From positions 3,182,131-3,246,130 of the forward strand of contig NC_134033.1 in the NCBI RefSeq assembly GCF_964204645.1: a stretch of DNA of 64,000 nt, written 5' to 3'. This document shows, piece after piece, positions 146-64,000 of this stretch. Both the position numbers and the translations under genes were made by a program. This DNA is from Tubulanus polymorphus. Taxonomy: Eukaryota; Animalia; Nemertea. The notes under the pieces were generated by a model that was not told where the DNA came from, made no database searches, and saw nothing but the letters and a program-made list of their open reading frames with translations. Each line of letters opens with the position of its first letter. Positions within the stretch are counted from its first letter, which is position 1.

Positions 146-3100
146 GCTAGAAATGGTCATTTAGTGTCGTATGACAGTCTGTTCCCCCGTTATTCGAAAC
201 GGAAGTTACAATATCGTATCAGTAGATTTGCACTCAGCTCGAAAATCGACATCTATGAGTCTGTATTCGGAACTCAGGAATTAAAACTAACAGTTTTATC
301 AGAGAACTGTGATCGAGCTGGTTTTTATATATTTGATGGTAGTAATTTCACAACTAGACGCTATGGTCCGTATTGTCCTGGTTCATACTACGGTCGATCT
401 GTCGTCAGCCTGATTACATCAGGTGGACCGGTTACTGTAGTAGCATACGCTTACAACTGGCATGATCTACTAGTATCTGGTTATCTCAAGTTTGTTCCTA
501 CTGACTGTGACGGGTATGTTCTACAGGAAGGAGAACGACAAATCACATTGACGTCATATTGTCTCGTGATTACTCCTGAAAATCGACGCCTACCGGTAGA
601 AAACATTGATGTATTATCAGAACACGAATATCAAATTGACAGATGTTATCGTACAGCTATGAATCCCTGTTCAGCGATAAGTCTCAATAGTCAATTGTTA
701 AATACCAGTCTCGTAATAAACCATGTGAAATTATTACTCACTAAATATAGATTCTGGAGGACACCACTAATGATTGTATTACGACGTAAATGTCAGAAAT
801 TAAAACAAAGTCTACATATTCCAGGGATCCGGGGTGGAAGGGATGCTATAGATTGTGGACTCGTGCAGTCACCGAACTTCCCTGGATTATCAACCTCTTT
901 CTCAACTATATTCTTTAGTTTTTCTTTTCCTACTGACAAAAATATAAATCATTACATCAGATTCCTGTTTAAATTTATTGGACAAACATCATGCTCCGAA
1001 TCTGTTGGTACCCGCACAAGGGGATCAATATTACTAACACAAATTATCAAAATATTTGATGATCCGAACAATTTATTTTCCACGTTTACAGAAACCCGTC
1101 ATACAACAACAATATGTGAAAATAACGCAGTAGCAGGACTTGTATTGTACAGTCTACTCGGGTATGACTTGTATTTTGAGCTGTCAAAGTACATGCCAAT
1201 ATTTCGAATTCAATACACTTTAGAACAATCACCTTTAAAAAAACACCGAATCAATGGCTGCCGATCAGATTTTCTAGATTCAGGTGTTTCGTGTATAAGA
1301 TACATCAAACATGAACGTCTGAATTGGGAGAACGCTGAAATTTACTGTCAACAGAAATATGGAGGACATCTTCTCAGTATCAACTCTGAACAAGAAATGA
1401 TTGCCGTGAAAAAGCTGTTCGCTACAAAACTGCTTCATGAGGCATATTCACAGGTGGCGCTTATTGTGATGATTGGATTGAAATGGCAGGTAAAATACAT
1501 ATCAAATATTAATCATCTAATTGAGCTTTCATATTATGATTTATCTTCATGTCATGTGTATATATAAGGTATTAAAAGCTATTCCAGAAATGATTAGAAC
1601 ACAGAAAATAATCCAAAACAAGTTTTCACCAATGTAGGTATAACAAGTGTTTGTCTTTAAAGGAGTCCAGTGGTTATTACTCGTGGTCTGATGGTAAACC
1701 GTTCAGTTACACGGAATGGTTCGAACCCGCTGCTGTTAATGAAACGATACCAGAAGTTATTCGAGGATTGATATCTCCGCTAAGAAAACAACCGATAAAT
1801 GACGTCAATATGCCGTGTACGGCGATGATACTGAATAATCCACGAGGATCGGCGAACTGGGTTCGATTCCCGTGTCAAATCGAGGAGACGCACACGACAT
1901 TCATTTGTGAAACAGAAAGAAACGATTTTAATGCATCTTCACAAAACGATACAACTGGAATAAAGCGGAAAAACTTTGAACTATTTAACTCCACGTGTCT
2001 AAGAGGATGGATTCATATAGAAGCGCATTGCTATCAGATACTTACAGACTGGCAAACGCTCCAATCTGAAAGTGTAACAATCCAGACAGCCAGAGAAATG
2101 TGTCTTAAAATCGGTGGAGACATAGGTATAATAACATCTGATATCGAAATTCAGTATTTGATAAATGTTTTCCACTATCAGCATCAATATGGCGCTATAC
2201 TGACTTATCATATAAGCGGAAGAATTGTGGCAATAAAACCAGTTGTAATTAGAGATTGGATAACATATTTTCAAACAGTGAAATGGTCAGTGACTGCCTT
2301 CGATAATGTCACAGATGAAGCGCATTCCGTGCTATGTTCCTACGATGTAACTGGTGAAGAGTTAGCTTCTATAAGCGGTTGTAAATCGTGGCAGTTTGAA
2401 TGTAACGATCAAAGATGTATCAGCGACCATCGCGTATGTGATACCAGACACGACTGTCAACACGGTGAAGATGAACTCAATTGTACGGATATCAATTTAC
2501 ACAGTCAGTTCCGCTGTAACGATGGGCAGGTTATATCGATTAGCGGTTTCTGTGACTTTATACGAGATTGCGTCGATGGCTCGGATGAGAACTCGTGCTA
2601 TCATATTTCATGTTCCTCTGATCAGTTTAAGTGTAACGACGGACAATGTGTGGGTAAATATAAACGATGTGATGGACTTGCTGATTGTCAAGATAAATCC
2701 GATGAGATCGGCTGCTCTTCGGACGAATGTAACGGGTTTTTGTGCGTAAATGGCGAATGTATCAGTTCTCTGTTGTATCGGGATGGTGTTGTAGATTGTG
2801 GCGGGGACCTCGAAGAAGATGAAATAGTAACGACCGATATAACAATCAAACCACAAATTCACTGCACTACAGAGAACTACTGCACAACCAATTTCACTTC
2901 ACTCTGTACCGAATCGGAAAAACAAAGATGTTCATTCGATTCTCCTCATTGTTACGCGAGAAGAGATAGATGTATTTTAGAAAGAATGCCGACAGGTTTT
3001 CCTGTTTGTAGAAGACTCGAACATTTACTGAATTGTAATGAGTTTGAATGTGCAGCTGGTACAGTGAAATGTCCATCGTCTTACTGTATACCGATTAGAC

Positions 3101-38538: not shown

Positions 38539-48650
<10,112 letters not shown>

Positions 48651-49597
48651 TCAACAATGGAGCCACCCTTCTATTTTGCCGAGAACGTCATCCATTTGGA
48701 TATTGTCGGAGCCACCCTTATTGGATACAGGCACAAAAGCATGGCTTCTTCACGCTAAGATTGATGAAGCCACCCTTCGATCTCTCTAAGAACATAATCA
48801 GATAACAAAAGAGAATTAATTTTTTCACCTAAAACTACAAATTCAGGTTATTTCCTATTCTACTCAGAGTCTCCGGGGGTACAGGGGACATCCAAGTATT
48901 TCTCCTCGGTGAAGGACCCTGCCCTTCCAATTTGAAAAAACCCCGGATTTTTCAAGCAATTACACAAAATTATCCAAGTTAATCAGAGAAATTTCTAAGT
49001 TTAAAATGTTTACAATTCATTCATTTTCTATTGAATCACGTATTGATAAAGAATCACGCAGTAAATGGCATTATCAAAATTCCCGGAGTTTTACAGTTTC
49101 TTTAGCACAATTTGTCAAATTCCCTGAATATTTTCTAGATTTTCCTGATTCCCATTTTCTAGATTTTCCCGATTCCCTGAGTTTTCCAGGTATTTTTGTG
49201 CAAAATCCATCAAATTCCCCGAGATTTTCGAGTTTTTTTTTCTGATTCCCCGAGGCTTCTCGGGTTTTCCAGGTCAGCGGCCTAGCTGAAGATAGATTAA
49301 TCAATTGCGAAAAATCGCTCCCACTTAATTCAAGGACAACGAATTCGAGTTACGAAACAACAGTTCACCGGTACAGTCAGCTAGTGTCGCGTAAAAACCA
49401 TAATTACGCGAACCAACAAAAGGCACGAAAAAAAGCCCGGTAATATTTATTTGACACCTCGAGCGCGCGCGCGGCATCGAGGCCTAAAAACACAGTAATA
49501 ACCCCTTAAAAATAAACCGAAAAAAAAATAATTCATCATTACTATTCCGCGAAATCGTCGCGTGACCTTGAACTAGTTTCAATACAGCAGTGCAGTA

Positions 49598-49642
<45 letters not shown>

Positions 49643-49779
49643 GACCGCTGCGAGCAGACGCGCGCGCGCGCCCAGGGCTCATAGCTCCGTTAAAATATGA
49701 ATATCATAATCGATAAAAACGACAGCTGGTTCCGAACGGTTTTTTGTGACAATGTTACCGATACAAGTAGTACTGACAC

Positions 49780-51756: not shown

Positions 51757-53043
51757 ATATGGGGATGAGGTGTTTGGAGGTGAAGGAGAAAAAAGAGAAC
51801 ATGAGAGAGAAAGGGGCGGAGGAAGAAGAGTAGAAAGAACAGGGAGAAATAAGAGTGGAGATGAGGGAATGGGGAGAAAAAAGAAGGGAGAGAGGGGAAG
51901 GGGAGGTTGAGAGGCAAACAGCTAGGGAAGGTGAGAGCTACTAATTGCTCGTAGGAGAGAGTGAGGCAGAACAAGGGAAGAGAAGAGAGAGAGCAGAAGA
52001 AGAGTCTACGGAGCAGACGTGAGCCGTCTGACTGACTTCATGACGGGGAAGATGATAAACGATTATCATCATCACCAGCATCATCATCATCATCATCATC
52101 AATCATCCCGAAATTAATCAATAAAACCTCGCTCTAATTTCAGATGGCAAAAAATACAACTAAACCGCGTCGCAACAGATTATCTCACAAACCTGACCCT
52201 AACCTTGAAAATAAGGGGAGGTAATTAAAAAATACAGTATTCTTACCCTAACCGTAAAAAAGGGGGTGTAATTAAAAACTACAGTAGTCTTGTCAGTCAG
52301 TTCTAAACCTTGCAACTTCTTAAACGAAAGAAAATGCCTCATATTAGGCCACACAAAGAAATACCCGAGCTTCTCAAGAAAGTCAAATTCCGCCCACGTC
52401 GATAAAAGTCCACAATAAAAATCAAAAAATCAAATGCAGTCTTTAAAAAAAAAATATAAAGATAAAATTTTCATCACTTTCGAGAAAAAAATCTGATGAG
52501 AAACAAGGGTATTTCTTTGTGCGGTCTTATATTTATATATTTCCCTGAACTAAGCATCCTTTAAGCTAAAACCTTTGCGCGAGCGCGGCCGGGCTTCGCT
52601 CGTACTCAATCTAAAACGAGGAACTGCCGTCCGAAAATATCACGCGGAAACGCTTTCAGGAAACGTAGGACGCACGGGTCGACGTGGGAAGGCATTAATT
52701 TAAAGCTAAACTAAAAATAGACCAGGTCGATGATACAGAGCATGAACAGGATTAAGTCAGTTCTTCGACCTTCTACGAATACAGCCTGACAGAAAAATAT
52801 AGAATTTCGATAAATTCTATATTTCGATGTATCAAAAAATTGGAGTTGGCGTTTATTTTTTTTCATAGATTATAAAACTATTCTCGATGCGTTTGTTTAT
52901 TTATCTATAAAATCATTCGCGAATCGATATCGGTAAAGTTTTTTTATAAGCTCCACCCTGTTGTTGTTTATCAAGGAGAAAAACCTGCCAGCACTGAATA
53001 TATGGATCTTTCAAAAAATGTGTTAACTATTACACGCTATACA

Positions 53044-53410
53044 GTGAAATTGAGCCCACGCAACTGTGGAACTGGGTTCAGAGTCAAATTAAACCTACAC
53101 AACTGTGGAACTGGGTTCAGAGTGAAATTAAATCCACACAACTGTGGAACTGGGTTCAGAGTGAATTAAACCCACACAACTGTGGAACTGGGTTCAGAGT
53201 GAAATTTAACCCACACAACTGTGGAACTGAGTTCAGAGTTAGACTCAAATTAAACCCACACAACTGCGTAACTGGGTTCAGTCAAAGTAAACCCATAAAA
53301 TGGTGGAACCGGGTTCAGAGGCAAACACAACTATGGAACTGGATCTACAGTCATGTCAAATTAAACCCATACAACTGTGGAACTGGATTCAGAATCAAAA
53401 TAAACCCACA
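53044..53410. repeat. ~39-40-bp tandem repeat containing CAACTGTGGAACTGGGT
   Basis: Tandem units. The same motif forms the termini of the short palindromic elements at 27494-27760. Confidence 0.85.
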
Positions 53411-53705
53411 ATCACACTTGAAAGAAATAGATCTCTCCAAATATGCTAAAACATTTCTAATCAAAATGTTTCCTAGTATTCAATAAGGCTAAAGCAAATG
53501 CGAGAAGGACAGGTGTCAGACGGATTCTTTCTGGGACATTGAGTTAGTCCTGACAAGGACTGTGTTAAAGCGTGTTGAAATTCAACAACACCGCTGCTGC
53601 CATCTGGGGTGAGAGTAGCGCCATCTACATGACGTCTGCATCCGTCTGCTGCTGGAAGCGCCATCTACAGGAGAATATACGCATCATTTCTATGTCGTCT
53701 GCTGC

Positions 53706-54035
53706 TCAATCGGCGTCTGCGATGTCCGTCTGCTGCTGCTCTGAGGCGTATAAATCTTCTTCGTCCAACTCGATCAGACAAATCTCCCTCAACGCGTCCA
53801 TCTCGGCGGCCTGGCGCTTCGCGTATTCGTAATACAGGCGACGCACGCCCTCTATACGCGACGTCTGCAAACGCCGACTGTACATGAACGCGCGCGCGTT
53901 CGACGACTTGGCGCGCGTGAACTGCACGTCAAGCCGCGCCAAACGCTGGTCGAGCAGCACGACTTTGCGACAGGCGGCGCGGAACTTCTTTTCGATCGCC
54001 ATGAACTTCTCGATCGCGGTCGTCGTCGAAGACAT
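53706..54035 (-). CDS. Intronless uncharacterised ~109-aa alpha-helical protein (paralog A), nested in the GCKIII intron
   Basis: ATG in good context (GAAATGT), GC/CpG-rich codon-like composition, TATA box upstream. Aligns without gaps over ~66 aa to ORF 62783..63133 (E.KF......LD..L.R...QF.RA...N......RRLQ...IEGVR.....YA...A.EM). Confidence 0.85.
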   Translation of the reverse strand: MSSTTTAIEKFMAIEKKFRAACRKVVLLDQRLARLDVQFTRAKSSNARAFMYSRRLQTSRIEGVRRLYYEYAKRQAAEMDALREICLIELDEEDLYASEQQQTDIADAD

Positions 54036-54140
54036 TTCTGGTCGAAGTCCGAGTTTATAGTAATTAAAATAAAGCGTAGTAGCTGTAAAGTCGCTGATGA
54101 CTGAATGAACGGATGATGTTGATCTCGAGTCCTGGCTCTG

Positions 54141-54148
54141 TATTTATA
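54141..54148 (-). promoter_or_regulatory. TATA box of nested paralog A
   Basis: GCTATAAATA on -, about 110 bp upstream of the ATG. E-box GCAGGTG lies about 20 bp further upstream. Confidence 0.65.
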
Positions 54149-57100
54149 GCAGGTCTGCACAATACACCTGCTGTGGCTACTGTCAAACATCTGGTCCAAT
54201 CACTGTTCGGATATCAATATGACTATCGACCAATCGCTGACCACGTCTGGAGTGTGCCAGGCATGTGCCAGCACACTGCCATATCCGGGTTATTTCCGCT
54301 GGTAGGTTATTTTCGCCGACACGTAACAAAGGAATAATGCTCGGCCTTGAATATATACACGCAGTTGAATAACTAATTTAGCACACGAGGGGAAGCTTTG
54401 TTCCTCTTGTGGGGGAAACATTGTTTAGGCCGAAGCATTCAAATGCTCCCGATCCATACCTTATGCATAATGTATACAACATTGATCTTTGATGAGTCTT
54501 CTCGGCAAACAATGAATTTCCCCTCGAGTAGTAATTATTAGTTGCGTTTCATTATTCACGAAATCATCCGCAACTAAAATTCCGATTATCAAATCCGATA
54601 CGTTCGCTGTGCATTATTTGAAAGTATAGAGGATATCATCATCAATCGATTCAAGTTTAATGTAATATCTGTATCTATCGGGAGTGTTGAGATTACCAGT
54701 TTGGAATAGAGATAGCCAGCGTACACGCTTAGACATGGAGTATAGATAAATATAGAATTAAAAACCGCCCTAAACAAATTTCAAAAATTAAAATAGAAAC
54801 ACGAACATTTTATGAAAACAAAACACGAAATTAAAAACCTGACGATGGTCTCTGGAAGAGCGCGAAACTTTGCGCCGGTGAAAATGCGAAATTTGCAAAA
54901 ACTGATGATCGGATCTTGGAACAACCGATGCCAGGTCAAACTGAATGTATAAATCAAGTTTCAATCCAATTGATTCCGACTGCAATTTAGAAGGAAAGAA
55001 TTCATCTGATCAATAACTTTATCGCTTATCAATATTCTATTAACTTTTCTTTAAATATAAATATAGGAAAGAGTTTTGACGAATTATTTCTAAATATCTG
55101 GGAGCCTGAGTTACATAGTCATGCGTGCTTGCCCATAGCTAGCCCATTTTACTAAAACTTTTAAATAGGCCCTATTAGATTTATAGCTCATTCCCTCTTT
55201 ACACACGCGGAAACTAGCTCAAGAGATTAACCCCTATCATTTACAACCGAACTAAAAATGCCTGCACATCATATTCATGGTCAGAAAATTTATAACGAAT
55301 TTCTTTTTCCCAAATTGAAAAAAAAAACTAAATCATTTTCGAAGAAAAATGTTTTTCGAAAAATATAAGGAAAATTTATGTTTAAGAATTATTCTCAGTA
55401 TAAAGGCCAGCTAATTTGAACTGCTTCAGATCGGTCAGGGCGTTGGTCAGGTGCAGCTCCGATGGCCAGCATTACGTGGACAATAGGAACAAAGGATCGA
55501 TGGCCCAGTTGTCCCCCGCTGTGTTACATACCTCTAGAACGTGGACCCCCTAGCGGCGTATAACAGGTCACAAGCTTTCTGCGTTAACGTTTAACTGCAA
55601 AACTGCTCCGAAAGGTGACGAAAAATTTTGTCAGGTCTATGGCAGTTATATAATGGACTCTGGGCGCCCCACGCTGCTGTGATAGAGGTGGTGTTACCTA
55701 ACTGTTCGGACTAAACGAAACACCCAGTCCCCAATCCCCCCCCCCAAAAGATCGCAAAATATTGAGAACAACATCAATCGGGATTTGAAGAGGGATTTCT
55801 CTGTCCCGGTTATGGGGGAATAAGTAAAACAACTAGTCTATTTAACTAGTCTATTTGAAGTACCGCGCTTTCGCTACTAATGTATAGTAGCTTATAGTCA
55901 GGTGAATTTCCATTTTAAAATCATTTGTCAACAGAAGGATTTGTTACTTTCTTATAACAACAAAGTTAAGCATGGGGATTAGTTTTGAAAATCCTGTTCT
56001 AACACAATTTAAACACCTTTCACAACTGCGTAAACAATTGACATTGAATCATTTGAAAACAGAACAGGGGATCAGGCTTATGGGGGTAGACAATATATTC
56101 TAACTAAGTTCTCAAACCTCTCAAGTTCGGAAATACCAGTTTCGGAGGTGCGCGGGAACAGACTATTGGCACTAAGAAAGGGGATTAAACGTATTAACCC
56201 ATTTTAGGAATCGCTAGGCAGAGAAATCAGCCACGATTCTAATCCGCATTTGTTTTCTCAACTGGTGAGGCTGTTTTCGTTAAGAGTACAGCTGACCTAA
56301 TAAAAATAAACATTTCTCCCACTGGCGACCTAACTATTATCCAAAAATAAGGACACCTTTTTCACTAAAACCACCTCAAAAACCCAGGAGGGGGTCCGGG
56401 TTTTAACAGAAACTTCAAATCTATTTGCTATAGGTAACTTCGTGATTTCAGATGCGTGGTTCGAAGTGCAGCGCTAATTTACTGAATGGTCGCGGCAATC
56501 AAAAATTGCTTACAACGCGCTTGATTCGAATGAGGACAAAAATTCAAACTTCACCGTTTTCAAGCTTTCATAATCCTTTTCGTAAAAACTGAACCAAAAA
56601 AAAAATTCTAACCCGATTCCAAACTATTCTTAACCGCAGATATAGACATTCATCGATGAAATAATATCTTTCATAGCCTATTTTTCCGCCAAACGCAACT
56701 TAAAAATCGCCTTCACCAAAAAAAAAGATGTCCCTAGGTGTATGCTGTATACACGACATAAATGACTATTTGCTCGGTGAACTGATTCCCGACAAATATT
56801 ATTCCAAGCATTGACTTTCTACGTAGAATCAACCGCCGGGTCGTCACGCGAGCGAAAGCTATGTTTGAATACTTGATTTGCGCGACTGATAAAAACCGGC
56901 GAGCGGCGGGCGGGGCACGGCGGGCGGCGGTGAAAGCCATTTCCGTAGATAAACAAAACGATGAATTCATGTTATCGTATATCAAATATTCAATATGATA
57001 GAGTTTGAAATACCAGACCGTTTCAGACATAACCAATATTTGACTGGGCGGAAAAAATTGTTTTTTTTTTGTTGCTTGATCGTAAAGTTTTCATCGTGGC

Positions 57101-57854
57101 TCTGATTTAGTCCTTAAACGGGCAGAGCTGTGAAATAGTTCGTCGGACATCTGAATCGGCACGACCGGTCTTGTCGTCGAGTTCGCTCAGGGTAGCCAGG
57201 TCCGGCGGCTAGTCCACGCAGTGTCTCAGATTTAAGACTAGTCTTAACGAATATCTCGGTTTCGGGTCAGTTGAATACTCGAGGCTTTTTAGATTTAAGA
57301 CCAAAGACTTTCATTTGCTTCTATCGCCAATCTAACAACTTAAGACCAGTCTAAGCACATTTTGCTTCTATCGCCAATCTAACAACTTAAGAGTCTTAAG
57401 CTCATCTTGGTTCTATAACCAATCTAACAACTTTAGACCCGTCTAAACTCATTTTGGTTCTATAGCAAATCTAAACTCAGTTTAGTTTTATAACTGCGGT
57501 CAAGCTATTGTGATTTAAGACCGTTTTTGGACTTTAGATCTTGTCAAATAAATAACAGAATCAATCCCTATTTCAAGATCAAAAACAAAGCTTAACAAAG
57601 CTCGATTTCAAAATAATTAAGACCGTTGGTTCCTGACATTGAGATGGAAATATTCGCTAGATGGAAATATTCGCTACATAAAACCTCGCGGGCTTAATAT
57701 CGTAAGTATATCGTACCATACACTAATAACCATTACTCCGCATGTTTAAACAGTTGTTTTAATAAGCGTAAAAACATCTCGCGTGCGCAAGAGAGAAGAG
57801 AATTACTTGTTTTTATTAAGTTTAACAAATTCATTCGTTGTTTATTCATATTGC

Positions 57855-57903
<49 letters not shown>

Positions 57904-60208
57904 CGCTACTACTACAGACCTATACAACACTTGCGATACTCGTAATAACTACTCGCGCCGTTTAAAAAATCTAATATTTAATTCAACCCAGCAGTGAATA
58001 AACAGACAGCGTATTTTTTCCTCTTCAAGTACCGGGTTAGATCGATGAACTCATTCACATTTTTCCGCAGCCGTATAATCGGAACCCGGTTCCACAATTC
58101 TGTGAAAACGAACTAATCTTAATTTCGAAGTTAATCCTAACTCACAACTGTGGAACTTGGGCCACGGCGTTTTTCGCATTTTCTTTTCACATAATTTTTC
58201 ACCGAAGTGGTCACCGATCACGATCCGGACCGATTGAAAAGAAATTTCTTAAACTTTAACACAAATTTAACGCAATTAATTCAGAGCTCGACTCGGTATT
58301 AGGCATTAAAAAAAAGGGATCAAAATACTTCTGAATATTTCTTGAATATTTTCACGACATTTCATCGCAGATTTTTTAAAATTTGTTTCCCTTCCCAAGC
58401 GCAAAACAATGCTCCTAGTAATGACTCGACCCGCAATTGAAACAACACCTACTCAATGACCTAGATCAAAGACCTAATCAGCCTATCAGGTGCGCTAATT
58501 ACCGAGTATACTAATTAATTACTAAACAAGCTTAATTAACATTTCTTTCTGAGGAACAGTTAAGCTATATAATCAGGGTAGGTAATTATCAAATAAAAGA
58601 TCAAAGCACCTCGAATGGGCGTTCAGCTGCCCTCAGATACTACTGATCATAAATCACTTGTTTATTCGAAAAGATTATCATTTAAAGTGTTAATCGTTTC
58701 AAAACATTGGAAAAGGTGTTAACAAACCACTGTTTCAACTCAGGGCGAAATTTAAATACCCCTATAGGCGTTAACAAATCACTATTTCAACTGAGAGTGA
58801 ATTCAAAAGGTGTTATACAAATCCTTATTTCAATTTCGCTTGAAATAATCGCTAGAGCCTTTGTTTTAGGTCGAATTAAATTAGCTTCTTAGGTTCGATA
58901 AAATTTTCAACTCAACTCTTGTTTTTTTTTCTTTTTCGAATAAAAACTTCCTCAATCAGCCCATGTTTAGGATATAGTCTAAACGTAAAAATGAATATAG
59001 AATCTAGAATTCTTGCTGATGACTTCAGTATAAACTCTGAGTTAACTCTAACTTTTTTCTTTTTAAATGTATATATAGCTTTATTTCAGGGAAAATTTTA
59101 CAATAAGTTACATTTGCTAAGGTCAAAAATTGACATTAATAGCAAAGTTGTTAATTGACATTAATAGCAAGTTAACTCTAACTCTGACTATGATGTGAAA
59201 CCGGGATGGAACGAAATTAATTTTTAGAAACATTTAACCTTATTCGAACATTGAACTCGAGGCTGTAGAACTATTGATGGGGGGGGGGGGTGTGGTAGAT
59301 AGTAGGTCTGGTAAATGTCAGGCACACACTTGTCACCCACCCACGGTGTCTGGTTTGAAGGCTTAATTGAACACATACTGACCATCAGCAGATCAGGTGT
59401 GAACAGTGTCATATTATGCAATAGGGACTTGTCATTGACAAAGTCAACAAATAACAGGCACAAGTCACCGATACAAACCAGACTACCTGATCTATCTCTC
59501 CTGACGTCTCTGATTGTTGTGGTTTTTACCAGAAATGAGAGTAATTCGATATTAAAAATAGTTGAAATGGACAACGAAAGAGAAATTATTTTTTTGATCC
59601 TTAGTTTAAAACAGTCTACTCTCAAATTGTAGTTGAATTGGCAAAAAATGAAAAATGGGGGAAAAAACTTTTTTTTAACATCGAAAATAGTAGTTCGATT
59701 GAAAATGAACTAGAAATTATTCCGATTTTGCGATTATTAATTTCGATACTTTTGGGTTCAGTATTCGAGCTCTTCGAAAAGAAGTAACTACTCTCGGAAA
59801 GTCATCGTAGTCAGGTCCGAAAATAGGGAAAAGGACCTTTTCGATATCGGAAATGGAAGTTTGATCGAAAATGAACAACAAATTATGGTGATTTTTCGAG
59901 TATTTCGTATAAGTTTTGGATCGGTAATTTTGCTGTTAAATAGGGAGTAGAAACTACTGTCAAATTTCAGTCATTGCCAGGTCTGAGCAGTTCTTGACGT
60001 TCTTGTTCTTGTTCTAGCGGTTCCGGCCTATATGACGTCATCATCAGACCAACCAACGAGTTTGTACGTAATATCACTCATTGTAGTAGGGGGTAGTGGT
60101 AACTAAGGGGGATCTTAAAAGGGAATACTCGACAACTAAAGGGTTCCCATAATAACATAGCACAGTTATTACATCATCAGTAACCTAGACGAGTAGTACT
60201 GAATATAG

Positions 60209-60547
60209 CATCCTCCCCCGGCAGGGATTCGAACCTGATGGCATCGAGATTGCCACGGCACGAAACCCTGCCATAATCGACCGTGCGCGCAGATACATGC
60301 GCAGTTCAGATGATGTGATTTTTAGCCAATCAGAAATCCCGTTTTATTTTAGCCCGGGTTTTCCCATTTATAGTTCTTCCTTGAAATTTGCCTCAACGAT
60401 TATACAACGAGCAATCTGATTGGTGCCGCCAGTTTTCGTTCGGAAAGCTGCGCATGTACCTGCGCACCCGGTCTACTGATGCAGGGGTTCGTGCCGTGTC
60501 TGAGTGTAGCGATGCCATCAGGTTCGAGTCCCTGCAGAGGGAGGATG
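60209..60547. mobile_element. Mutator-like MITE with long B-box-containing TIRs and 9-bp TSD
   Basis: TIRs catcctcccccggcagggattcgaacctgatggcatcg / cgatgccatcaggttcgagtccctgcagagggaggatg. Flanks tgaatatag / tgagtatag. Confidence 0.8.
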
Positions 60548-62035
60548 TGAGTATAGGTTAACTATTTATTTGACGCACGAGCTTTCGCTACTAATGAATA
60601 GAAGCTTCATCAGGTGAACGAGTGAATACATCATCAGTGACAGGTGCATGTCACCAGTGACAGGTGCATGTTAACAATGACAGGTGCATGTCATCAGTGA
60701 CAGGTTTATGTTAACCAGCAGTGACTGAGCGAGTGGTCACGCACGCAAACAAACTGATCACAACTCAACAGGTCGGTCACGCAGACAGCTGAAATACTAT
60801 ACAGGCCCTTCAGATGTTTGATGACGAACTGACTGCAATTGAAAGGGATTTTGGAACGCAAACATAATTTCGAACAGCTGACCACTGATAACATACTTTA
60901 CTATAATAGGTTTTACTCTTCCCGAATTCAGTTTATTCTAAACCGATTTAAACTTATTTTGATACTGGACCCTGTTCCCCCCAAAAAAAAGTCCAACTAA
61001 CTATAAAGGACCATGGGTCCAGAAGAAGCAACTGAGTGACGTTTTACTTCTAGGCGTAAAAATCAATTTGTTCCGGGATTTGCACTGATAACGATGAATT
61101 CATGGTGCAATACTGTACACCATCGCGGTTCTAGACATTGAACTTGAGGCTGAAGGGTTTTCCCAGTGATGTCATCATCACGAAACTAGGTCAAGCATCG
61201 ATTAGAGGAACAGGGAAAAATTCAATGAAATTTTGCGCATTTTCTCCCAGTACTTCCAAACGGCTTAGAGCTGATGGACGAAACTTTCCACATTAATTCC
61301 GACACCTATTTCCCTCCTAACGACAAAACACCGGTGACCAGTTGCTGAAAAGTTGGCTAGAATTAACCTATTGGATAGTTGACTGAGAGACAATTGAAAT
61401 ATCATTGTTACTATAGTATTTATCCACTTTCGACCACTGAACCCAGCTGTGTATATCCAGTGGTTACACTTTGTGCCACCAAGGAGGTCACCTCCCCGGT
61501 ACCACCAAGAGCTTACGAAAGTCTTACGTTCGATCTAAAAACAGGGATTGTCATTTATTTTGTTCGATAGATTTCGCTTGATTTCGTGAACCGTCCCTTA
61601 CAAACTCAACTGTCGCTTAAAAACCGGCAGGTTTTTGTTTTGTTATAAGCTCTGAAGAGTCGAATTTCAATTGTAATCAAATTATCGTCTATAATTCTAG
61701 ACATGTTTAATGCAAATATCGTATTACATCAATCTAAATATAGCTCACTTATATTTACATAGTGGAATATTTATAAATTAAACTAGATTAGTCATAGAAT
61801 ATGAGGAAATCCTGTGACGCAGCGGTAATAAACATATTGAAAATATTTTGAAACATGAATTTATGAATGAATTGTATATTACGGTTGATAATAACATTGA
61901 GATAATCTGCTCGCGTTTTAAATCCTTCAAGCCTGCTGCGAACATACGGGGCTGTACACGTATCAGTAACCAGTTGAAATGTGCCTCAAATTCATCGGTA
62001 ATGAATGAGGGTAAGACCGGAGCGCTTATCAAGAG

Positions 62036-62300
62036 TGGTAAGAACCTCAGTAACACCTTTCAATGGGTAAGACCCTCAGTAACACCTATCAATGGGTAAG
62101 ACCCTCAGTAACACGTATCAAGGGGGTAAGACCCTCAGTAACACGTATCAAGGGGGTAAGACCCTCAGTAACACCTATCAATGGGGTAAGACCCTCAGTA
62201 ACACCTTTCCAGGGGTATGACCCTCAGTAACACATATCAAGAGGGATAAGACCCTCAGTAACACATATCAAGAGGGATAAGACCCTCAGTAACACCTATA
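62036..62300. repeat. ~30-31-bp minisatellite GGGTAAGACCCTCAGTAACACNTATCAA
   Basis: About 9 units. The core is shared with the 33-kb repeat. Confidence 0.9.
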
Positions 62301-62623
62301 AAGGGGCTAAGGGGACAATAGCATTATCTGAATTCCATAAGTTTTTTTCTGATTCTGAGTATAACAGGATTTTTCTTTTGCTAAAATTGTTCTTGATCAG
62401 TATCGGTTGAGGCAGCTGAGATTGAGAGATTTCAAACTGACAACAACTAATTAACACTACTCCACACACATACAGATAACTGTGTCAATAATTTACTTAA
62501 TTAACGAGTTAAGGCTTAATTACAAGCCCCACAGAAACGAGAAGTGATGACTGGTTAATAATTCAATTAGTAATTAATTAACTCCCAGTCAGGTGAGTAG
62601 GTATCATTCCGGGCAGCACCGGC

Positions 62624-62658
62624 TATATAAACCAGTAGCATACTGACAACAGTCAGTT
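62624..62658 (+). promoter_or_regulatory. TATA + Inr core promoter of nested paralog B
   Basis: TATATAAA at 62624-62631. Inr TCAGTT has its A at 62655, 31 nt downstream, which is canonical spacing. CAGGTG at 62590. Confidence 0.75.
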
Positions 62659-62782
62659 CAGTTCAGTTGAACAGAGCAGACGCATCGAACGCAGACGCAT
62701 CGAACGCATAGAACACACAGCAGCAGACGCATCGAGCACACAGCAGCAGACGCATCGAACGCTTCAAACCAACCTCTACACG

Positions 62783-63133
62783 ATGGACGAAATACAACAA
62801 ATGGAAACAGCGCCCCCTGCCGGTGACCGCATCGACTACTACATGAGCGTCGTGCACCGCATCGCCGAGCTCGAGTCGAAGTTCGTTGGCGTCGTGCGCG
62901 CGATCGCCGTGCTCGATCGCAAACTTGACCGCGTCGAGACGCAGTTCAAACGCGCGACGCGAGACGACAACAAGTCGTGCCGATTCACGCGGCGTCTGCA
63001 ACTCGCGAGTATCGAGGGCGTGCGACACGTCCATTACATCTACGCGCAGAAGGTCGCGCTCGAGATGGAGCGCATGAACGTGCTGTGCGCCGAGATACAA
63101 CGCGACTCCGTCAGCTTCAACGCGCGCAACTGA
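62783..63133 (+). CDS. Intronless uncharacterised 116-aa alpha-helical protein (paralog B), nested antisense in the GCKIII intron
   Basis: ACGATGG start, GC/CpG-rich ORF, canonical TATA-Inr promoter, and clear homology to 53706..54035. Confidence 0.87.
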   Translation: MDEIQQMETAPPAGDRIDYYMSVVHRIAELESKFVGVVRAIAVLDRKLDRVETQFKRATRDDNKSCRFTRRLQLASIEGVRHVHYIYAQKVALEMERMNVLCAEIQRDSVSFNARN

Positions 63134-63346
63134 GATACCGGCGGCGACACCTGGTGGCGTTGATAGCGGTGACACCTAGAAGGTGTAATCGGTACTAATA
63201 CGCTCGGTCAAACGGTCCTTCTCAGGACCAATCAAACGTCCCAGAAATAGATCATTCATAAAACCGGTCAAAACCCGTATTAAACCCAATATCAATTTTG
63301 ATATTTCTAAAACACTTTTTGAGTTAAAGTTCTCAAACCGTTGACT

Positions 63347-64000
63347 AAGTATTTGACACAAACTCGGGGTAGAATTTTAGCGGTCTCAACTTAACCGCAG
63401 TAAGAGACAGAGTCTACTGTATTTCACAAACTCTTACTCAGTATTTGACACCAATTCGGGGTAGAATTTTACCGGTCTCAACTTAACCGCAGTAAGAGAC
63501 AGAGTCTACTGTATTTCACAAACTCTTATTCAGTATTTGACACCAACTCGGGGTAGAATTTTACCGGTCTCAACTTTACCGCAGTAAGAGACAAGAGTCT
63601 ACTGTATTTCACAAACTCTTACTCACTATTTGACACAAACTCGGGGTAGAATTTTACCGGTCTCAACTTTACCACAGTAAGAGACAGAGTCTACTGTATT
63701 TCACAAACTCTTACTCAGTATTTGACACCAACTCGGGGTAGAATTTTACCGGTCTCAACTTTACCGCAGTAAGAGACAGAGTCTACTGTATTTCACAAAC
63801 TCTTACTCAGTATTTGACACCAACTCGGGGTAGAATTTACTGCAGTAAGAGACAGAGTCTACTGTATTTCACAAACTCTTACTCAGTATTTGACACCAAC
63901 TCGGGGTAGAATTTACCGCAGTAAGAGACAGAGTCTACTGTATTTCACAAACTCTTACTCAGTATTTGACACCAACTCGGGGTAGAATTTTACCGGTCTC
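63347..64000. repeat. ~91-bp tandem repeat running off the window end
   Basis: TATTTGACAC..ACTCGGGGTAGAATTT recurs at about 63350, 63442, 63533 and onward. Later units carry a short deletion. Confidence 0.92.

Follow-up and report, generated by a model that had tools for sequence, protein, structure and literature searches.

The nemertean Tubulanus polymorphus carries, within the 64,000-nucleotide (nt) stretch of DNA analysed here (assembly GCF_964204645.1, contig NC_134033.1, positions 3,182,131 to 3,246,130 of the forward strand; hereafter the window), two short intronless open reading frames (ORFs), ORF1 and ORF2, which are members of an uncharacterised protein family. Both are followed by a histone-type 3′ signal consisting of a stem-loop and a downstream box and, on sequence grounds, we consider it likely that they are host non-histone genes built and processed like replication-dependent histone genes. 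In the histone pathway, SLBP binds the stem-loop, the U7 small nuclear ribonucleoprotein pairs with the downstream box and the transcript is cleaved 4–5 nt past the stem (PMC10730174). Replication-dependent histone mRNAs are described in one review as the only known non-polyadenylated cellular mRNAs (PMC4604434), and textbooks and reviews treat the stem-loop 3′ end as private to these mRNAs (PMC4604434, PMC10730174). In our literature searches, no earlier publication on non-histone genes bearing a histone-type 3′ signal came up. In window coordinates, the two genes and their 3′ elements are the following.

53706..54035, minus strand: ORF1, intronless coding sequence (CDS) of 109 amino acids (aa; stop included), a member of the predicted helical-hairpin family with an acidic C-terminal tail.
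53546..53561, minus strand: ORF1 3′ stem-loop AGUCCU-UGUC-AGGACU, 144 nt past the stop codon.
53525..53536, minus strand: ORF1 downstream-element-like box TCCCAGAAAGAA, 9 nt past the stem (spacer aactcaatg).
62783..63133, plus strand: ORF2, intronless CDS of 116 aa (stop included), a long-branch member of the same family as ORF1.
63214..63229, plus strand: ORF2 3′ stem-loop GGUCCU-UCUC-AGGACC, 80 nt past the stop codon, with exactly the sequence that the H3 stem-loop has in this genome.
63239..63250, plus strand: ORF2 downstream-element-like box TCCCAGAAATAG, 9 nt past the stem (spacer aatcaaacg).

An earlier reading of the window, made from its letters alone (hereafter the sequence-only reading), had described two single-exon ORFs at exactly these coordinates and strands and had proposed that they are ungapped paralogs over 66 aa. 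The paralogy is confirmed and extends further, with 35% identity over a gapless alignment of 81 aa (BLASTP, E = 3e-19). That reading had also called the flanking DNA unalignable. This stands in so far as the two loci, even with the CDS included, give no mutual blastn match at E ≤ 1e-5, but a short conserved 3′ element had been overlooked.

The 3′ element emerged from both a general and a genome-specific model. An Rfam scan of the intron in which the two genes lie returned a single meaningful match, to the histone 3′ untranslated region (UTR) stem-loop RF00032 at 63209–63253 on the plus strand, 76 nt past the ORF2 stop (28.1 bits, E = 1.9e-4). We then used a covariance model, termed R1, built from eight genuine histone 3′ ends of this genome and containing no family sequences. 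R1 matched the ORF1 site (53516–53569, minus strand) with 46.7 bits and E = 1.7e-12 and the ORF2 site (63206–63259, plus strand) with 38.7 bits and E = 7e-10. Across both strands of the window these are the only two significant sites, and the next best scores 11 bits (E = 0.75). In both genes the signal is composite, with the stem-loop followed after 9 nt by TCCCAGAAAGA. Both stems have 6 base pairs (bp) and a 4-nt loop, a G-C pair at position 2, a U-A top pair and U at loop positions 1 and 3, and the boxes TCCCAGAAAGAA of ORF1 and TCCCAGAAATAG of ORF2 lie at 9 nt, as TCCCAGAAAGAG does in H3, H4 and H1.

The histone genes of this genome provide the reference for these likenesses. The core histone locus on C10 (C10:8357487-8433954) consists of a quartet unit of approximately 10.2 kb, repeated at least seven times, in which the order, read in C10:8360001-8370000, is H3 (+), H2B (−), H2A (+) and H4 (+). 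H1 lies outside the unit, and four dispersed H1 genes are found on C2, C11 (two) and C12. The genuine histone ends read GGTCCT-T(C/A/G)TC-AGGACC, then 9 nt, then TCCCAGAAAG(A/G)GCC (also written TCCCAGAAAGRG), so that the stem is GGUCCU/AGGACC with the loop UAUC, UCUC or UGUC. The genuine H3 box, TCCCAGAAAGAG, has the same spacing as the boxes of ORF1 and ORF2, and family and genuine histone ends agree in their stem, type of loop, spacing and downstream box. An exact composite pattern occurs at 39 sites in the 268-Mb assembly, compared with 0 for the reversed control; 25 of these lie in the histone cluster, 4 at H1 genes, 5 at family genes (the ORF2 end being an exact match), 2 at a RING-like ORF and 2 at transposase fragments.

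The RING-like ORF is a second non-histone candidate. It is Cys-rich, 112–113 aa long and present in two copies on C1, one in L072 (C1:14508383-14511214; ORF at 2111–2449, plus strand) and a minus-strand copy in L073 (C1:19226643-19229474). It matches PF24921 weakly (E = 6e-4, below the cut-off), and a near-perfect histone 3′ end lies 48–58 nt past its stop (R1, 65.3 bits, E = 1e-18). The transposase fragments are broken MULE-like ORFs, L075 (C5:18088867) and L076 (C6:16338180), whose downstream signals score 32–33 bits.

Beyond the window, R1 matches 15 of the 24 family members in the genome at E < 1e-4, together with two weak matches. The Rfam histone stem-loop is found behind L005, L007–L010 (both genes of each head-to-head pair), L015, L017 (which is ORF2) and L022. 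A structural scan of the paralogs gave the consensus of the composite element as a 6-bp stem RGYYCU, a loop UNUN, a spacer of 8–9 nt and then TCCCAGAA(A/T)AGA, and the paralogs that carry it share no other non-coding similarity. The stem covaries: in an alignment that had been fitted to the model, the score is 0.341, compared with 0.181 ± 0.026 for shuffled alignments, none of 500 of which attains it, and with no more than 0.113 once the pairing partners are slid. Compensatory double changes (G-C/A-U, U-A/C-G and C-G/U-A) are seen in stem pairs 1, 3 and 4, that is, in three of the six, while pairs 2, 5 and 6 are invariant and 94.4% of the alignment cells are paired.

Related genes of other species end in the same manner. 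One relative forms a tandem array of at least nine identical copies with a period of approximately 1.93 kb, and another is carried by Logan contigs of 1,689 bp. These come from four runs and are rotations of one another, which indicates a homogeneous repeat unit of approximately 1.66 kb, or a circle. In each of the nine array copies, in the 1.66-kb unit, in a gastropod-like gene of the conserved type and in a gene of a second nemertean, the Rfam histone stem-loop lies 22–70 nt past the stop, at 24.7–33.5 bits. The mollusc-type genes (the nine array copies, the 1.66-kb unit and the gastropod-like gene) have GGC(C/T)CT...AGAGCC stems followed by CAAGAAAGA or CGAAAGAA, a form of the signal that is of the canonical metazoan type. 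In the array copies ACCCA follows the stem and precedes CAAGAAAGA, which is also present in the gastropod-like gene and which we take to be the classic invertebrate downstream-element consensus. In the gene of the second nemertean the stem is GGTCCT...AGGACC, with TCCCAGAGAGA after it. This comparison of lineages covers the family genes. The short Logan and ENA contigs of relatives, which may be RNA or DNA, show no poly(A) tails. Approximately 400 nt downstream of the second-nemertean family gene, at 2142–2260 of L057 on the minus strand, lies a U5 spliceosomal small nuclear RNA (snRNA) gene (89.6 bits).

At the level of sequence, the 3′ signal is shown to be present and specific, to keep its spacing, to covary and to be conserved across phyla. 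A histone-type signal at both genes points to histone-like, replication-coupled, non-polyadenylated mRNAs, although use of the signal and coupling of expression to replication are what we infer from it. In the mechanism that we propose, SLBP would bind the stem-loop, and TCCCAGAAAGA, 8–9 nt later, would be the presumed pairing site of U7 snRNA, as in the H2A, H2B, H3, H4 and H1 genes of this animal. Transcripts of approximately 575–580 nt would be cleaved 4–5 nt past the stem, which places the cut at about 53541 downstream of ORF1 and at about 63234 downstream of ORF2. The mRNAs are predicted to lack poly(A), and their levels would track those of histone mRNAs in S phase and, probably, as maternal stores.

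Several observations weigh against this proposal. The first stem pair of ORF1 is A-U instead of G-C, and the Rfam scores fall under the 34-bit gathering cut-off, as do those of the genuine histone ends of this genome (25.7–31.7 bits). Between seven and nine of the 24 paralogs have no detectable signal, among them L014, the member nearest the cross-phylum consensus; two long-form relatives, L046 and L058, have none either. Searches for U7 snRNA with RF00066 found nothing, in control genomes as well as in this one, and a pattern of the downstream-box complement followed by an Sm site has no match in the genome. For the family protein there is neither a PF00125 match nor a histone fold, no chromatin domain can be recognised in it, and its core is only weakly basic. 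Finally, ORF1 is not in the protein collection that we searched (a word-index search with ORF1 alone was empty, and profiles were needed to reach its relatives), and the sole paralog present there as a RefSeq model is L014, which has no 3′ signal. mRNAs of the kind we propose would be lost from poly(A)-selected data, and this could be why the collection lacks 23 of the 24 copies and contains a signal-less one.

If the proposal is correct, the stem-loop 3′ end pathway has clients beyond histones, and the RING-like ORF with its histone 3′ end raises the possibility that these are more numerous in these animals. The supply of the protein would have to be coupled to DNA replication or to the maternal stores of histones, making its function directly testable, and there would be an annotation blind spot, in that such mRNAs are missing from poly(A)-selected RNA sequencing. 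We lean, with somewhat less assurance than for the histone-like nature of the two genes, towards the broader view that the SLBP/U7 pathway, regarded as histone-exclusive in animals, has served a non-histone family since before the split of nemerteans and molluscs. This protein would make up a sixth class of replication-dependent product, produced in step with histones, and would probably be a Lophotrochozoa-specific chromatin or histone-handling factor.

Six-frame searches of the assembly place the 24 family members, all intact ORFs of 94–181 aa with a single coding exon, on 10 contigs. Head-to-head pairs occur at C11:1697392/1698501, C11:1702054/1703125, C4:23821953/23822680 and C3:8140509/8141845, and tandem neighbours at C4:2897670/2900078 and C3:1022021/1030092; ORF1 and ORF2 themselves form neither a tight pair nor an array. 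RefSeq XP_074640406.1 (uncharacterized protein LOC141898434, Tubulanus polymorphus) has exactly the sequence of the copy at C2:24827656. Among 1.84 billion representative proteins, a profile search recovered 1,111 relatives at E ≤ 1e-3, of which 578 reach E ≤ 1e-10, in agreement with the resemblance to hypothetical proteins of molluscs and annelids that the sequence-only reading had suggested. The named relatives come from bivalves (Mya, Pinctada, Ruditapes, Mercenaria, Mizuhopecten, Dreissena and Mactra), gastropods (Littorina, Nucella and Patella) and, besides these, only the annelid Lamellibrachia and Tubulanus. They are hypothetical proteins throughout, none with a Pfam domain, and the automatic name 'nucleolar transcription factor 1-B-like' given in Littorina probably reflects the acidic tail alone.

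ORF1 and ORF2 align across the entire family core (approximately 85 residues), in which the YYEYA box and the invariant Gly of LEGVR lie. In a maximum-likelihood tree they fall in a nemertean-specific clade (support 98/98) and are not sisters; ORF1 groups with two C4 genes (support 100/96), and ORF2 is a separate long branch of 2.19 changes per site. The gastropod and bivalve sequences cluster by taxon, a pattern expected under vertical descent. ORF1 and ORF2 are independent members of an ancient, uncharacterised lophotrochozoan family of proteins of approximately 95–180 aa, as judged from these sequences. They are not the local duplicated cluster envisaged by the sequence-only reading, given 24 members over 10 contigs and two non-sister genes, and the further members that it expected past the window edge were absent both from the 40 kb downstream, which we added to scan for kinase exons, and from the surroundings of the locus in the whole-genome searches.

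The paralogs are under purifying selection. The ratio of non-synonymous to synonymous substitution rates (dN/dS) is 0.12–0.25 among paralogs whose synonymous sites are unsaturated, and 0.10–0.18 against a related gene on a metagenome contig of a second nemertean; between ORF1 and ORF2 the synonymous sites are saturated and the pairwise dN/dS is uninformative. The tandem pair L002/L012 (C4:2897670 and C4:2900078), the closest relatives of ORF1, has a dN/dS of approximately 1.0. L012 has lost several conserved residues, lacks the stem-loop signal and may be decaying.

A family so dispersed invites the explanation that a selfish or mobile multicopy ORF (a transposon, retrocopy or virus) acquired a histone 3′ end that aids its own spread and not the host. 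The scatter of the copies over 10 contigs, the recent copies that share only units of approximately 800 bp across chromosomes (L005/L006; L020/L021/L044), the homogeneous tandem arrays in other species and the composite signal behind the two MULE-like transposase fragments would all suit such an element. However, nucleotide comparison of the 24 copies restricts their similarity to the CDS, or to the ~800-bp unit in recent duplicates, and detected no larger mobile unit around them. No transposase, reverse transcriptase, terminal repeats or long neighbouring ORFs accompany the copies, all 24 of which are intact, with dN/dS of 0.1–0.25. Moreover, the family spans three phyla, with a lineage-specific version of the signal in each, and its members group by taxon as they would under vertical descent. 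We consider a selfish origin very unlikely. A transposon or viral ORF as the identity of the two genes was likewise rejected, with similarity limited to the CDS or the ~800-bp unit and members clustering by taxon.

The promoters of the two genes contain the following elements.

54148-54141, minus strand: ORF1 TATA box TATAAATA, with the ATG 113 nt downstream.
54170-54165, minus strand: ORF1 CAGGTG motif, with the TATA box 22 nt downstream.
54227..54236, minus strand: ORF1 CCAAT-type element CGATTGGTCG (reverse of CGACCAATCG), common to the paralog L002 and the H3 and H2A/H2B promoters.
62624-62631, plus strand: ORF2 TATA box TATATAAA, with the ATG 159 nt downstream.
62590-62595, plus strand: ORF2 CAGGTG motif, with the TATA box 34 nt downstream.

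The sequence-only reading had given each gene its own TATA box with a CAGGTG 20–35 bp upstream, as these positions bear out. Approximately 19 of the 24 family members have a TATA box at −40 to −160, and a TATA-adjacent CAGGTG occurs only at ORF1 and ORF2; as a family-wide promoter mark, CAGGTG was therefore rejected, since the other 22 members lack it at that position. The CCAAT-type box of ORF1 is suggestive only, a hint of likeness to histone promoters, as chance alone yields sharing of 9-mers at such a scale and the count of 9-mers common to family and histone promoters is close to the chance expectation. GC content at third codon positions (GC3) is 0.79 in ORF1 and 0.80 in ORF2, compared with 0.62–0.77 in the histones and 0.35–0.66 in the other paralogs; the intron DNA around the two genes is approximately 40% GC.

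The sequence-only reading had proposed rapidly inducible (developmental or stress) effectors that share an enhancer landscape. In this account, ORF1 and ORF2 would be a local cluster of ordinary polyadenylated, rapidly inducible genes, served by shared intron enhancers and followed by functionless sequences that happen to resemble stem-loops. The strong TATA promoters with a nearby CAGGTG, the short intronless form of both genes and an ATTAAA/AATAAA hexamer 145 nt past the ORF2 stop agree with it. However, the two genes are not sisters and have no further member nearby, the 22 other members lack the CAGGTG at that position, and neither AATAAA nor ATTAAA occurs in the 500 nt past the ORF1 stop. 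The 3′ element has the stem, the type of loop, the spacing and the downstream box of genuine histone ends, is kept across paralogs that have no other non-coding similarity, and covaries. Nothing that we found points to inducible effectors; the histone-type 3′ signal, which that reading had missed, points to a different kind of regulation, and we regard the inducible cluster as highly improbable.

There is similarly little chance that ORF1 and ORF2 are silent or decaying relics of an otherwise functional family, too young to have decayed. In favour of such relics, ORF2 has its long branch (2.19 changes per site) and lacks the conserved helix-1 Cys, ORF1 is missing from the protein collection, the profile search gave no high-scoring self-match for ORF2, and dN/dS is approximately 1 in the pair L002/L012. 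However, both genes are old, with saturated synonymous sites and unalignable nucleotides, and neutral decay over that time would have erased the intact ORF, most near-invariant residues, the TATA box, the complete and correctly spaced stem-loop and downstream box and the strongly biased, histone-like GC3 that each retains.

Both genes lie within an intron of a host kinase gene, of which one exon is in the window.

48450..48605, minus strand: host kinase exon AANVLL...QSAYDT, of the GCKIII group (STK24/STK25/MST4-like).

This exon best matches STK24, STK25 and MST4 (E = 8e-24), compared with 1e-16 for MST1/2. In the 40 kb added past the window end, where kinase exons were compared singly with references, the HRDIK exon (...LEYLHSERKLHRDIK), which the sequence-only reading had not found up to position 64000, lies 1.36 kb beyond the window end, at approximately 65358–65500 in extended coordinates, and the GKGSFGEV exon at approximately 69500, some 4 kb beyond the HRDIK exon. 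The host intron is therefore real, and the nesting of both ORFs in a GCKIII kinase intron, which the sequence-only reading had proposed, is corroborated. The HRDIK|AANVLL intron spans approximately 16.75 kb (48606–65357) and encloses ORF1 in the sense and ORF2 in the antisense orientation relative to the kinase. The placement of the genes within it is incidental. The histone-type cleavage signal of ORF1 (53525–53561, minus strand) lies on the sense strand of the intron and, if active, could truncate kinase pre-mRNAs unless its action depends on the promoter or on a short transcript, which raises the question of how the host kinase transcript escapes cutting at such a signal in its own intron.

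The intron also contains repeats. A 30-nt tandem repeat of at least eight copies (62036–62305) lies approximately 320 nt upstream of the ORF2 TATA box, and a 20-nt tandem repeat (60635–60714), with CAGGTG in each unit, lies 1.9 kb upstream of ORF2. The ORF2 5′ UTR (62660–62760) is made of CAGACGCATCGAACG-like repeats, and similar GCAGCAGACG motifs occur in the 3′ end of the ORF1 CDS and its 3′ UTR (53700–53640). A direct repeat with 92-nt spacing (63344–63500) follows just 3′ of the ORF2 3′ signal. ORF1 lies between tandem repeats at 53009–53410 and 57315–57474, with periods of approximately 39 nt and 45–47 nt; these belong to extremely high-copy families (word depth 1e4–9e4 in DNA runs compared with approximately 20 for the flanks), and contig joints connect the two sites. 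Two sequencing runs mapped over a region of at most 6,000 nt at ORF1 behave as genomic DNA, and run X2 has no coverage of the ORF1 CDS. At 49584–49656, sub-threshold Rfam matches to RUF21, mir-297 and mir-1277 fall on both strands of the same ~70 nt and were taken as a low-complexity artefact.

The family protein resembles no characterised domain. Pfam searches with both ORFs and ten relatives gave nothing above noise, with no match at E ≤ 10 for ORF1 and only sub-threshold coiled-coil noise for the relatives, and the PDB, searched by sequence and by profile, likewise returned only coiled-coil noise, in keeping with the absence of any recognisable named domain in the sequence-only reading. A feature search of a protein atlas gave uninformative scores of at most 0.84. 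AlphaFold2, run with the family alignment, predicts that ORF1 forms an antiparallel helical hairpin (H2-44/H48-106) with helices of 43 and 59 residues and a mean predicted local distance difference test score (pLDDT) of 90.1, and the hairpin suggested earlier from the heptad pattern is thus borne out as a prediction (pLDDT 90). The family proteins usually have an acidic tail, which in the longer forms is rich in Ser, Asp and Glu; ORF2 lacks the conserved Cys of helix 1. It is conceivable, although doubtful, that the protein has a part in chromatin or in the supply of histones, possibly as a dimerising hairpin with a histone-binding acidic tail. With low confidence, we favour a dimerising hairpin whose role would be the handling of histones or chromatin while DNA replicates or in early cleavage.

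Foldseek against the PDB, a fold search of the atlas and a wide search with VIA found generic hairpins or no match. The ESCRT-III core, the ING N-terminal dimerisation domain and the LSD1 tower share the hairpin fold class with the family protein, at Foldseek template modelling (TM) scores of 0.7–0.8 and VIA Z scores of 10–12, but they form a flat, non-specific list under the bar of the tool for helical folds, with 4–15% identity and no sign of homology. The relatives that do belong to the family, such as Mya arenaria MAR_017281, Pinctada FSP39_011085, Lamellibrachia LSAT2_008627 and Tubulanus LOC141898434 (profile E values of 1e-35 to 1e-94), have in common the core ...RSFRY.LRL.LA..EGVRN.YYEYA..KA, and none of the mollusc, annelid or nemertean relatives carries a functional annotation.

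A comparison with replication-dependent histone genes is closer at the level of the gene than of the product. Like those genes, the family has intronless CDSs, TATA- and CCAAT-type promoters and multiple copies in divergent pairs and tandem arrays; its 3′ ends have the 6-bp stem, the 4-nt U-rich loop, the fixed spacing and the downstream box of the histone genes of this very genome; and the GC3 of ORF1 and ORF2 is histone-like. By contrast, the product is a predicted two-helix hairpin with a weakly basic core and an acidic tail, and the genes are dispersed outside the histone cluster, with approximately one-third of the paralogs lacking the signal. Among histone genes, alternative 3′ ends are found in variant histones and in genes such as H2A.X, the latter able to use either a stem-loop or poly(A). 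The family appears to split in a similar manner: some signal-less members carry AATAAA hexamers, as L012 does, while L014 has neither a stem-loop nor a hexamer within 500 nt, so that stem-loop members would stand beside members, such as L012, that are apparently polyadenylated. Whereas the products of H2A.X-type genes have the histone fold, the family proteins do not, and the likeness between the two systems would lie in the alternative 3′ ends of their genes.

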